From assembly GCA_047495785.1 (NCBI GenBank), contig JBLDXI010000032.1:1612001-1676000 (forward strand): 64,000 nt of DNA. The letters are read 5' to 3'. The position numbers and the translations under genes were made by a program. Numbering within the stretch: the first letter of the stretch is position 1; every line of letters starts with the position of its first letter. Shown piece after piece: positions 41,156 to 47,530 of this stretch. The stretch is from Lepidodermella squamata (lineage: Eukaryota > Animalia > Gastrotricha). The notes beneath the pieces were generated by a model. The model did not search any database. It saw only the letters and a list, made by a program, of their open reading frames with translations, and was not told the DNA's origin.

Positions 41156-42681
41156 ATGCTGTTACTTATTATTGGCTTGACAAGCTCAGCGTTATTGTTC
41201 TTAACGTATCGACGCTACTTGCTCGATAAGTGGTATCACCTACCACCTGGTCCCGCCCCCGTGCCATGGCTAGGAAATCTCAACAAATTGATGCAGGCGG
41301 GAAAGAAGCCCATCCTTTGGGAATTCTTCCGGGATATGGCCAAACAATATGGGCCAATCATCACGTTTTACATGGGCCCCATTCGCATGATCGTCTTGAA
41401 CGACGCTAAAGTCATTCAAGAAGCCTTGGTAGAAAACGGAAAAACCTTCAGCTGGCGCATGGAGGGGAAGATACCTGGATACGAAAATGTTCCTGTTGGC
41501 ATTGTTTTCGCTAACCATGATAAATGGCGTAAACATCGGCGTTTTGGTATCAAGGCGATGAGGGAGCTTGGTAAGTGAGCCTATAAAGTTAAAAGGATCT
41601 TACAATATTTTGCCCTCTCCCAGGAATGGGGAAAGAATCGATGGTTACAAAAATTCACGAAGAAACCGAAATTTTGCTGGAAAATCTAAAGAGCTTAGCT
41701 AAGGACAAGAAACCAGTCGAGCCTAGCACAATGATATTCAACACGATTTGTAATGTTTTCTGCTCGATGGCTTTCGGCAAACGACTCAGCAGTGACGATC
41801 CAACATTCCACAAGCTGCTCGACTTCATGGCTGCTCTCAACGAGCAATCCACAGTTGAAAGCACTGCGTTCATGCTGCTGCCATTCTTGAAGTATCTGAA
41901 GACGCCAAGACAAGTGCAAACCATGTATGACATCATAGAACTGATGCATGGACTGCTGAAAACAGCAATCGATGAGCACAAGGCCGACTATGACCCGAGT
42001 ATAATTCGCGACTTGCCTGACCTATTCATTTCAGGTCAGAAGGAAGAAGCCATGGACCTTATGGACTTCACCAAAATCGTGTCTGATATGCTACTCGCCG
42101 GAACCGATACCACTTCAATTGCTATGTGGTGGACATTGTTCTACTTGACGAAGGATCCGGCTATTCAGCGAAAATGTCAGGAAACGATTGACCAAGTTAT
42201 TGATACAGATCGGTTGCCGACTTTGGCTGATCGGCCGAAGCTGGTTTATATCGAAGCGGTTATGAATGAAGTACTACGGCATGCTTCAGTCGCCCCATTC
42301 GGCCTTTACCACTCGAATCTAGATGAGCCCGGCAAGATATCCGGCTATGATATTCCAGCAAATTCTTTGATCGGCTACAATGCAACTGCTGTGCATCTCG
42401 ATGGCAATTATTGGAACGATCCTGATGAGTTCAAACCAGAACGTTGGATTGGCGATGACGGCCGGCTGCTGACTCATTCGTCGCATTTTCTTCCCTTCGG
42501 ACTCGGGCCGAGAATCTGTTTAGGCGAGAGTTTGGCGCGCGTCGAATACTTGATTGTCCTAGTTTCAATGCTTCATCGCTTCAATTTCACCCTAGCAACG
42601 CCAGATTCGAAATTGGAAGACGATTTCAACGGAATGGTTCACAAGCCGCCCCATTTTGAAGTCATAATCGAAAGCCGTTGA
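41156..42681 (+). CDS. Cytochrome P450, clan 2 (copy 8), 490 aa
   Basis: Exons 41156-41570 and 41624-42681; AGTDTT, EVLR, PERW, FGLGPRICLGE. Confidence 0.95.
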
Positions 42682-42998: not shown

Positions 42999-44966
42999 TC
43001 AATTCGCGCAATGTGTGGCTGTGATAGGCAGAGTGGATGTAGTTCCGCAACCCATTTGAGGATCTTGCGCGGGCGAGAACACTGTTCTGAACGCTGAGGT
43101 GTAACAGTTCCGAATCAGTATGGTACACGAGTCGGTAGCTGCTGGAGGTGAGTAGACATATGGCCCGCAGAGGAAATCAACGGCGCCCCCACTGAAATGC
43201 AGGGCAGACGGCTTACGACTGGTGGCATACGATGGTCCACCAACAATCGAAGATACGTACCTTTAAGAAGCAACTTGAAATATGTAGCTATTAAGGTGGG
43301 TTAACTTACGTTGGGGTAGCCGTAGCCCGGTATGCCGCTGTTGCTGTACTAGCCGCTGATCGTAGCATACCTGTAAAAAGCGCCCAGTTTAGAAGCTTAA
43401 CAATGTTCATTGAAGGTCATTACCTTGACTAGGGCAAATTCGAGCTCCAGTAACGGTGGTAGCTTGCTGGCCAGCGCAGACCGCGACTGCAGTGGCAAGA
43501 GCAGTCGCAGACTGAGCTGCAGATGACGACCTGGTGCCGGCAAACAGGTCTTCCAAAACCCACGGCAAAAGGAACGCGCTTCCGTTATTGTTCATATCCA
43601 AGAACTGGCAAGCTGCCCGTACTACATCAGTCGAACAGCCGAAACCTGTCTGCCGTTTCTGCCTGCTGTTCAGAACAAACTCTTTCGCCTGGCCGAGGAC
43701 TCCGCCAATGAGGGGCGGAATGCTTTGCCACCACGTTTGCCAATCGAAGCGTGTCTGGTCCTCCCGCCAGTGATGGTTGTTGCCGTTATTAGGTGGATAA
43801 TTTGGTGGCGGGGTAGCAGGAGGCGGTGGTGCGTTGAAGCGGAGAATCAATCGCTTATTAACAGCCTTTCGCATGATATCTCGAACCTGTTGCTCGAAGT
43901 CATTTTGCGACGAGGCTGACCTGACGGTCCGTGATTGCTGTTTGCGAAGGTTCTGGAAAACCACTCGGAGCTCGTTCTCAATCGGAGCATAATGCGCACT
44001 GACAGCTGCCATCACCTGGCTTACGCTTGCTCCATTGATGTTCACAGGAGTCGTTGTGCTAGTCGCTTGCGTTGTAGTTTGCTTAGCCGTAGTTGCAGCA
44101 CTGGGTGGTAGGGGCAGCTCAGTACTCATAACCGGCAATCCTGTTCTTGGCTTCGTAGTAGTGACCGGCTCTTCGAAATTCCCACGACAAGCCACAATCC
44201 CAAGACCGAACTTTCCCAGCATAGAATCACCGCTGGCTCGGACCTTTCTCCTTGGCTTGCTTTTCGGCTTCTTCTTATTGATTTGCTCCGAAGCGGTGCC
44301 TAGCAACTGAAGGGTCGGAGATCTATCTTTTGCCTCATCGCCATTCAGTACGCTGGCTGATAGACCTGTTTTACGGCACGCCTCTGCCACGCTTTGGCAC
44401 GATGAAGACCGGCAGAGAAAGTCAAAGCCTGCCTGATCGAACGAGTCAACAACCAGCGGAGAGATGCTGCTTGTCGTGGACAAGTTAGCTAAGCTTCGCA
44501 TCGCGCCCGCCGAGATGCATGGACCTTTTTCAACCCCGCCAAGACTGCACATCGACGCAACAGCGAGAAGAGGCGGTAGAACCTTAGGCTTATCGTCGAA
44601 GCCCGTGAGAGACAGCAGGACTAGTTTGGTCGAAGATCCGTTAGTCGCAAGTTGATAGATCTTGCAAGCCTGGTCTCGGGCAGCGTCGCCGCAGCTTGTC
44701 AGGGGTAGCCCGCCACTGCCGACAGCGGGGGCTGAGGGTGGAAGGCCGAACATGCTGTTCACAGCGTTCGAGGCGGACGCACTGACTGTTGGTGGGGAGC
44801 GGCGTGAACTCTCGACAAGAGCGTCCATTATCTTGCCACCAATTGCGTCAGGGTCGGTAGCTCCGCCTAGCAATGCCTGCAAATCACCAAGATTTGTTAT
44901 TGGGGGCTGCGAACGGGCTGAATTGGTGATGTACACCAGGCTCAACAGAAACAGCACCACTTGCAT
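42999..44966 (-). CDS. Secreted 621-aa proprotein with two Cys-rich repeats; the C-terminal repeat has a Hedgehog/peptidase M15-like zinc motif
   Basis: Signal peptide MQVVLFLLSLVYITNSARS. Exons 44966-43424, 43370-43310, 43260-42999 (introns 53 and 49 nt, phases consistent). The last exon encodes YVSSIVGG...PSALHFSGGAVDFLC...ATHCAN*. RQKR precedes the domain. Confidence 0.75.
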
Positions 44967-45848
44967 GATTCACCGGTACAATGGAACTAATTCCTATATG
45001 TTTGGAGAAGATAAAAGTTTTGATCAAGCTGAATTGTTGAGCTTTCGGGTTCTGCGGCTTCAGGAGCGATCGATTCTCCCCCCGCTAAATCAAAAGTAAA
45101 CAATCGCAGGAAATGGAGCTGTCTGTAAGGTGGGGGAGTTTAATTGCAGAAAGGTAATAATCACGACATTATTGGCGATGCGTCATTGAGATAATTAAAA
45201 TCACAATTATTAGAGCACGAAAATAATTTATGATTCACGTTGTGTACCTGATCCGGCACCGTGACGGTGCAGCTACGCGACTCTCGAGTTGGTATTAAGG
45301 GCGCAAACACTGGTCTGAAGCAAGCCACGCATCCGGTAATAAGCTGTTTTTTGCTATTGTGCCTCCGCAGCCGTGCGTGACATGCCTCCATACAAGCACA
45401 ATAGCCGCGTGATGTTGGGATATCAATTTAACGCTGAATCATTATTATCATCATTCAGTGTTCAGGTCATAGTCTGCGATATATACCTACTACTTACTGC
45501 AGGTTACTGTATTCAGAATTCACGACACGGTGAAGATTTTAAGCATACAACCAAGGCTTGGAAAATTAATCATGAGAGTGACCGCAATGTCTTTTATCCG
45601 GAAATCAGCAAACATGAAAATGAGAGTTGGTAAAATTAATAAATATAAAAATAATAAAATCCTCCTTAAAATGTAAATTTCCAATCATTTTTCCTAATTT
45701 TTTTCATTTTTTTTACACCGAGTTTTTGAGAGAACGCCCAGGATTGTTTTAATTTCTAAATTAATTGACATCAATTTTACACAAAGGCATAAATAAACTT
45801 CAAAGTTGAGCGATTTTCGAGCGGCAGACAGTCATAACAGAAAATACC

Positions 45849-46192: not shown

Positions 46193-47530
46193 ATGCTTTC
46201 AATTCGCTATTTAACAGCGGCTAACAAAACCATATCGCCATGTCAAATCATCGCCATCAGCCTCGTTTCATTCTTCATCGGCTGGTTTCTATCAGCATTT
46301 CGATTCGACTCATCACTATCGCCTTATACTACGGCAGATGATTGCTTACCGCCGCCTCAGGGCGAAAATCTTCAAAATTCGCCTGCGAAAAGTATTCGCC
46401 TCCTATGCTTGGTGCTGACATCGCCCGTTACGCTGAAAACTCGGGCAATAAGCGGCGTTAATGAAACGTGGGGCAAGCGATGTGATAAAACAGTTTTCAT
46501 TTCATCGAAGCCTAGTGATGATCAATCGGTTATTGACTGCAACTGCACGGAAGGCTACGACTATTTGTGGGGCAAGGTGAAAGCCGGATTCGCCTTCACC
46601 TACCGCCAATACCCTGACTTCGACTGGTATCTGAAAGCCGACGACGATACTTACGTAATCGTCGAAAATTTCCGAGCCCTCGCGGCGAATTTCGATCGAA
46701 ACGAGGCGCTGTACATGGGCCGTAGGATAGCGGCTATGGTTGAATACATGGCTGGCGGGTCGGGCTATGCGCTCAGTAATGCGGCTGTGAAGCGGCTTGT
46801 TGAAAAGGGCCTGTCATCGGATGTTAAGGGATGCAGGCGTAAGAAGGAGCGCGGCACTGAGGACATTGAAATGGGCATGTGCATGCGCGCACTCAACGTG
46901 ACCTTTGTTGATAGCCGCGATCCGCAAGGTGAGTGACCTATTTTCATGACCTACTTTCCAATTAGTTGATACCGCCTTAGTAAATAAAATAAAATCATTT
47001 TTTAAATTTAAATTTTTTTAAATTTTTTTCTTGAGAATTTAAAAAATCAAATAATAATTTAAAAAATATTTTTTTTATCAACTGAAAAATAAATAAGAAA
47101 TCTGGAAATTTTCATTCAATTTTTTCAATGATTCAAAAATCGAAAAGACGAATTTTCGGATCTGAAAAAATAAAGTTTAATTTATTAAAAAATCATTTTT
47201 AAATATTTTTCTTCTATAGATAAGTTGGAGACATTTATCCCTCATGACCCTGTCGAGAGTTTAACAGTGAGCCATAATCGGACCAATTTTTGGCTCTACA
47301 TGTTCGACTACTACAAAAGCTTTGAAGACGTGAGTTAACTTCATACCTCCCTTAAATAATTCTCACCGATATATCGCCGCAATCAGGGCGCAAAATGCTG
47401 CAGCGACCGGCCAGTGTCGTTTCACCGGCTCAACGCATCAATGATGCATGCCATGGACTACTTTGTTTACCGTTTACAGGCCGTAGACAACAGCGCTCAC
47501 GCAAAGCGGCGGCGGCGGAATGCCGAATAA
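46193..47530 (+). CDS. C1GALT1: GT31 glycosyltransferase, core 1 beta-1,3-galactosyltransferase-like (copy 1), 329 aa
   Basis: Type II anchor; RLLCLVLTSP, TWGKRCD, LWGKVK, WYLKADDDTY, YMAGGSGY, EDIEMGMC, CCSDRPVSFH. Exons 46193-46928, 47220-47329, 47387-47530. Confidence 0.88.

Follow-up and report, generated by a model that had tools for sequence, protein, structure and literature searches.

We analyzed a 64,000-nucleotide (nt) stretch of Lepidodermella squamata contig JBLDXI010000032.1 (called the window here, and the frame for all positions given) and focused on a gene on its minus strand, at 44966-42999. The gene encodes what looks like a secreted precursor, and we found that the 183-amino-acid (aa), nine-Cys domain at the C terminus of this protein (the C-domain) is its most conserved part and belongs to no described family. 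Taken as a whole, the product is probably a lineage-restricted, convertase-processed secreted pro-protein. An earlier note on this DNA had placed the C-domain among the Hedgehog/M15 (LAS) zinc proteins, an assignment that the comparisons made here did not support beyond one short motif.

The gene is longer than the open reading frame (ORF) through which it is listed. The ORF track gives a frame of 519 aa on the minus strand, which starts with an ATG at 44966 and stops at 43409-43407, and a GT donor lies at 43423, fifteen bases ahead of that stop. The earlier note had proposed that two more exons beyond 43407 extend the protein to ...ATHCAN*, and the transcript data bore this out. In run X1, a single 1258-nt contig spanning 42737-44096 omits exactly 49 and 53 nt, and the omitted segments have CT..AC ends on the plus strand, that is, GT..AG on the minus strand. 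Run X1 is RNA, because its contigs carry poly(T)/poly(A) loose ends, found at 42678 and 42777; a DNA-like run, X2, showed no such splice joints. The spliced coding sequence of 1866 nt consists of three exons and encodes 621 aa, ending in ...THCAN with a stop at 43001-42999. Coding exon 1 (43424-44966, from the ORF list) begins with the ATG at 44966-44964, encodes aa 1-514, and ends with one further base, the first of codon 515. It is followed by intron 1 (43371-43423; 53 nt, GT..AG), coding exon 2 (43310-43370; 61 nt, encoding an Ala/Thr/Ser-rich link within the C-domain), intron 2 (43261-43309; 49 nt, GT..AG, with its joint in the same X1 contig as that of intron 1), and coding exon 3 (42999-43260), which encodes aa 535-621 and the stop and contributes five Cys together with H556, D563, and H618. 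The 3' untranslated region (UTR) runs from 42998 to a poly(A) site at 42678, where a poly(T) loose end was seen in X1, and other contigs reach 42695 and 42737. Between 43421 and 44943 the X1 contigs follow the genome without a further break, so exon 1 contains no additional intron. We also noticed an acceptor-like site ending in TAG (aattag, 44985-44992), which precedes the start ATG by about 25 nt; it would fit spliced-leader trans-splicing, and the transcript contigs end at 44943.

The only relative that we found provided a second line of evidence for the gene model. An exhaustive phmmer search with the 519-aa ORF against 1.84 billion representatives returned one real cluster and one low-complexity match. 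The real one is metagenome protein cluster P0001, with members P0003 and P0004 (ENA contigs L001-L003). Its genomic contigs contain a single unbroken frame (L003 1396-2337) that corresponds to aa 308-620 with 44% identity, and this frame is colinear across both window junctions without a gap there. Exon 2 aligns gap-free to this reading frame, which has no intron. Together, the RNA contig and the intron-less relative are two independent lines of evidence which confirm that both introns are real, and the gene is transcribed, spliced, and polyadenylated. In the relative, we also noticed an intron acceptor at about L003:355; it falls within the N-terminal Cys-rich region, at a place where the window gene runs on uninterrupted. 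The intron positions therefore differ between the two organisms, since the relative is without the two introns of the window gene and has an N-terminal intron that the window gene does not have.

Conservation between the two proteins is uneven. The C-domain is about 60% identical to that of the relative (55-59% over the first half and 68% over the part encoded by exon 3, compared with P0001:207-290), the N-terminal region about 29%. All nine Cys of the C-domain are conserved in the relative, as are H556, D563, and H618. No further relative was found by a word-based protein search with the ORF, which gave no match, or by word-based searches with P0001 and with a C-domain profile, which returned P0001 itself only. 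Two JGI metagenome scans, one bacterial/archaeal genome scan, and one viral contig scan did not yield a relative either. In the searches of the C-domain, the exon pieces and the intron-less P0001 served as a proxy for the spliced domain; the half encoded by exon 3 gave no further relative, but it was searched by word- and pattern-based methods and family scans only, by which distant relatives could be missed.

The translation suggests the following layout for the precursor. A probable signal peptide, judged by inspection, occupies aa 1-19 (44910-44966), with a hydrophobic core and then A-R-S before Gln20, in line with the secreted protein that the earlier note had proposed. The N-terminal Cys-rich region (44376-44693) extends from C92 to C197, contains seven Cys, and ends in a ..DFLC.. 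block resembling that of the C-domain. A basic stretch separates it from a low-complexity Thr/Pro-rich linker (aa 268-306; 44049-44165), which is poorly conserved. Next come a middle region that aligns with the relative (aa 308-377; 43836-44045), conserved with fewer identities than the C-domain, and a Pro-rich stretch. A candidate furin-type proprotein-convertase site, RQKR, lies at aa 435-438 (43653-43664) and is followed by Gln439, the first residue of the C-domain (aa 439-621; 43002-43652), which both introns interrupt. The site had been recognized before as an R-x-K-R followed by Gln, and it proved to be conserved, reading RQKR|Q in the window and RTKR|Q in the relative. It thus has the R-x-K/R-R form of convertase substrates and stands at a domain boundary, directly ahead of the conserved domain; the residues immediately before it differ so much between the two species that they align only with gaps. 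The description of the C-domain as disulfide-rich likewise agrees with its nine Cys (444, 453, 497, 511, 566, 580, 587, 606, and 619). It also contains an N-G-S/T sequon that is kept in the relative.

Variants within the sequencing data indicate that the gene is under purifying selection, because the listed coding variants, 37 in all, comprise 31 synonymous and 6 non-synonymous changes. Both variants seen in exon 3 in X1 are synonymous. The contigs of both runs contain a second haplotype, with 34 differences in the 436 positions of 44373-44808 and scattered variants elsewhere. The haplotype contigs (44373-44943; ~8% difference) have a similar depth in the RNA run and in the DNA run. Almost all of the differences listed are synonymous, which suggests either high heterozygosity in this organism or the retention of two allelic copies.

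These features suggest a path for the protein, along the lines of known convertase substrates. The signal peptide would direct the precursor to the secretory pathway, where N-glycosylation at the conserved NGS/NGT sequon and disulfide bonding would take place. A convertase of the furin/kexin type would then cut after RQKR and free the C-domain, and the new N-terminal Gln could cyclise. The nine Cys could form four disulfides and leave one spare Cys for a covalent dimer or for metal binding, and the two His together with D563 may form a metal site. Once freed, the C-domain would act extracellularly as a binding module or ligand and not as a peptidase.

The earlier note had based its assignment on a signature, S-x-H-x-x-G-x-A-x-D, plus a terminal His. 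The core of this signature is real and conserved: HFSGGAVD (43176-43199; H556 codon at 43199-43197 and D563 codon at 43178-43176) has the form H-x-x-G-x-A-x-D and corresponds to HFRGLAVD in the relative, where H, G, A, and D are kept. H618 (43011-43013), three residues from the C terminus and adjoining C619, is conserved as well. The Ser, by comparison, lies at position -3 from the motif His, one step further out than the -2 of S-x-H. Translating the whole window in six frames (128,000 residues) yields the motif a single time, and 146 of 200,000 shuffles of the C-domain (0.07%) contain it. Its per-position probability is 2.6e-6, which corresponds to ~26 chance occurrences per proteome (assuming ~10 million residues), so that a motif-led reader will meet chance cases.

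LAS, or Hedgehog/DD-peptidase, proteins are defined by an H-x(6)-D motif together with an H-x-H motif, a catalytic Glu, and a fold made of a sheet plus helices (PMC6027127). In that fold, a central antiparallel beta-sheet has helices on one side, and the three ligands converge on one metal. HFSGGAVD supplies the first of the two zinc motifs. The second, which in M15 subfamilies can instead read [DE]-x-x-H or H-x-D, is absent from the C-domain, in which H618 stands alone in ..ITATHCAN (AAHCSY in the relative), with no His two residues to either side, no acid at -3 (T-A-T-H), and no Asp at +2. Among the comparators, D130-x-x-H133 is invariant in the alignment of the T5 endolysin family, and the M15A alignment has H-x-D. 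No equivalent could be placed for the catalytic general base (E177 of Shh) or for the SGYR/G-x-R arginine of M15; the strand before the motif reads SIVGGPSYATS, and the only nearby Arg (in TSRK) is Gly in the relative.

Sequence and profile comparisons gave a similar picture. Searches of Pfam, NCBIfam, and PHROGs with the ORF, with the separate exon pieces, and with the relative, at expect values (E) up to 10, returned no LAS family and chance-level matches only. Neither single-sequence nor profile searches of the PDB sequences gave a match, and neither did tblastn against phage genes. Smith-Waterman alignment to the Hedgehog fragment printed in PMC6027127 and to Escherichia coli MepK recovered the nine-residue block only, with z ≤2.25 relative to shuffles. 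For profile-profile comparison with hhalign, we used two reference alignments, M15A (A7; MepK and five phage peptidases) and M15C (A8; T5 endolysin and seven relatives). The C-domain reached a probability of 0.3-0.8% over 12-32 columns with M15A and 1.8-3.3% over 15 columns with M15C, compared with 23% (E of 9e-4, 58 columns) for the positive control, M15A against M15C. When the motif was masked, 30% of shuffles equaled the real score of the upstream flank and 72% that of the downstream flank. Taken with the absence of the second zinc motif, these results do not support the Hedgehog/M15 membership claimed before: the LAS resemblance appears to be confined to one short motif, two defining features that we looked for are not found, and membership is unproven. 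On the reading that we favor, the H-x6-D block would be a short local resemblance to LAS enzymes and not proof of shared ancestry.

Several points nonetheless weigh against a convertase-processed precursor with a C-domain of no described family. The HxxGxAxDF block matches the zinc block of LAS proteins well (HTKGQAMDF in MepK and HITGDAIDF in T5 endolysin), including the Val-Asp-Phe at its end, and the relative keeps the H, G, A, and D. The C-domain holds exactly two His, H556 and H618, and so does that of the relative, by our reading of P0001. The spacing of 55 residues between D563 and H618 and a third His near the C terminus resemble T5 endolysin, where D73 is followed by H133 in a protein of 137 aa. 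The masked-flank comparison has low power, because in the true LAS control pair itself the upstream flank gets no further than P = 0.05 and the downstream flank shows no signal (5% and 70% of shuffles), and its negative outcome is weak evidence only. AlphaFold2 predictions for the full C-domain of the relative (A2) and for the exon-3 part of the window protein (A5), made from two-species alignments, both had a mean predicted local distance difference test (pLDDT) score of 32, which does not amount to a confident model. In addition, cleavage, glycosylation, and secretion are predicted from sequence features and from general knowledge of convertases.

The points that concern the motif would suit a LAS-fold reading of the C-domain, which we consider unlikely overall. 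It would make the protein part of an unrecognized animal branch of the LAS/Hedgehog-DD-peptidase group, a disulfide-stapled, furin-released zinc domain that has kept the H-x6-D...H triad, has lost the catalytic residues, and is too divergent for profiles to detect, and we doubt this to the same degree. A narrower version, in which a very divergent and inactive LAS fold would bind zinc through H556, D563, and H618 and would be released by furin as a Hedgehog-like binding or ligand module, seems to us quite unlikely. It could draw on the fact that all hhalign alignments of the C-domain centre on the zinc block, one of them reaching ~22 columns further upstream, and that the real score exceeds 99.3% of column shuffles, but the region was chosen for this very motif, so the shuffle result restates the motif and is not independent. 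Against it also stand the flanks, which score no better than shuffles, the hhalign probabilities set beside those of a true LAS pair, the lack of any match in the family and structure databases, and the missing H-x-H. Furthermore, in the window species the ..DFLC block of the N-terminal region comes without a His, which hints at a structural rather than a metal-binding role for the corresponding block of the C-domain. The same motif evidence could be claimed for an active LAS-type zinc peptidoglycan hydrolase, an antibacterial effector possibly of bacterial origin. We regard this as highly improbable, since the catalytic residues of the comparators are missing, with T-A-T-H in place of the invariant D130-G-G-H133 of the T5 family and no Arg to match the invariant SGYR/G-x-R arginine. 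For the possible ancient bacterial origin raised in the earlier note, and for gene transfer with it, we see no evidence: no bacterial, phage, or other viral relative was found at any threshold tried, and the gene has spliceosomal introns. Finally, the protein might be an uncut component of extracellular matrix or mucus in which the dibasic site is unused and the Cys-rich regions are the cross-linking ends of a glycosylated linker. Such a role would suit the Thr/Pro-rich linker, the Cys-rich regions at both ends, the Cys spacing and DFLC block that these regions share, and the odd Cys count. It is nevertheless very unlikely in our view, as R-x-K-R-Gln is conserved although the sequence just upstream has diverged, the linker is poorly conserved, and the similarity between the two ends is not significant.

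We considered other likenesses of the Cys-rich regions. Those at the N and C termini share, in the same order, C-x8-C, a C-x(9-13)-C pair, the ..DFLC block, and C-x6-C, with Ser in the N-terminal copy of the window species where the C-domain has His. An internal duplication was rejected because the two regions are colinear but the similarity is not significant (BLAST E of 0.07; hhalign probability of 0.9%). ESM Atlas gave low-score leads only. One of them, an EF-hand (score of 0.85, few shared features) based on DMNNNG, was also rejected. Set against the 12-residue EF-hand loop, D-x-[DNS]-x-[DNS]-G-x-[ILV]-x-x-x-E, DMNNNGSAFLLP agrees at positions 1, 3, 5, and 6; both species, however, have Pro at position 12, loop position 1 is Asn in the relative, and the Pfam EF-hand family gave no match. 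The stretch DMNNNGS (43578-43598) is similar to the N-terminal half of such a loop without being a canonical EF-hand, and it also carries the conserved N-glycosylation sequon.

Two neighboring genes were noticed in the window. A convergent cytochrome-P450-like gene on the plus strand (41156-42681, read from ORF translations) has its stop at 42681 and a poly(A) site at about 42777. With the poly(A) site of the gene studied here at about 42678, the 3' UTRs of the two genes overlap in antisense by ~100 nt. At 46193-46936, also on the plus strand, we noted an ORF of 247 aa that by visual inspection resembles a glycosyltransferase of the fringe/C1GALT type (DDDTYV); it probably extends into additional exons.

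This analysis adds a well-supported gene model, in which RNA and an intron-less relative support exons missing from the ORF track, and it defines a conserved 183-aa Cys-rich domain of no family that searches covering billions of predicted proteins recovered from just two organisms. Were the C-domain a cryptic Hedgehog/DD-peptidase fold, the range of this fold in animals would be wider and a new furin-released zinc module would be added to it; as a LAS branch, it would be a secreted ligand or binding module resembling Hedgehog, with an origin outside the Hedgehog family. If it is not LAS, the protein adds to the lineage-specific secreted proteins and serves as a warning that HxxGxAxD alone cannot identify a LAS protein.

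Compared with known systems, the P0001/P0003/P0004 cluster is the one true homologue, with the same N-terminal and middle regions, furin-type site, and C-domain; it comes from another organism and has large insertions in the N-terminal region. LAS proteins (Shh-N, M15A members such as MepK, and M15C members such as T5 endolysin) share with the C-domain one block, H-x-x-G-x-A-x-D, whose His is flanked by Leu on the N-terminal side and by an aromatic residue on the other and whose Asp precedes a Phe, as well as an extracellular location, which is predicted for the window protein; T5 endolysin in addition has a single further His close to the C terminus. Unlike these proteins, the C-domain has nine Cys and a Ser shifted by one position, and the ~115 residues ahead of its motif match nothing in the LAS families. 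Cys-rich secreted precursors processed by convertases include the TGF-beta family and the Spaetzle/NGF-type ligands. A TGF-beta or cystine-knot identity for the C-domain was rejected, as it has no Pfam match to these families and, by our own reading, its Cys are spaced differently from those of a cystine knot; the domain is also longer (183 aa). In its organization, by comparison, the window protein is like these precursors: it has a probable signal peptide, a long pro-region, and an R-x-K/R-R site directly before a conserved Cys-rich C-terminal domain, whose odd Cys count is compatible with a disulfide-linked dimer.

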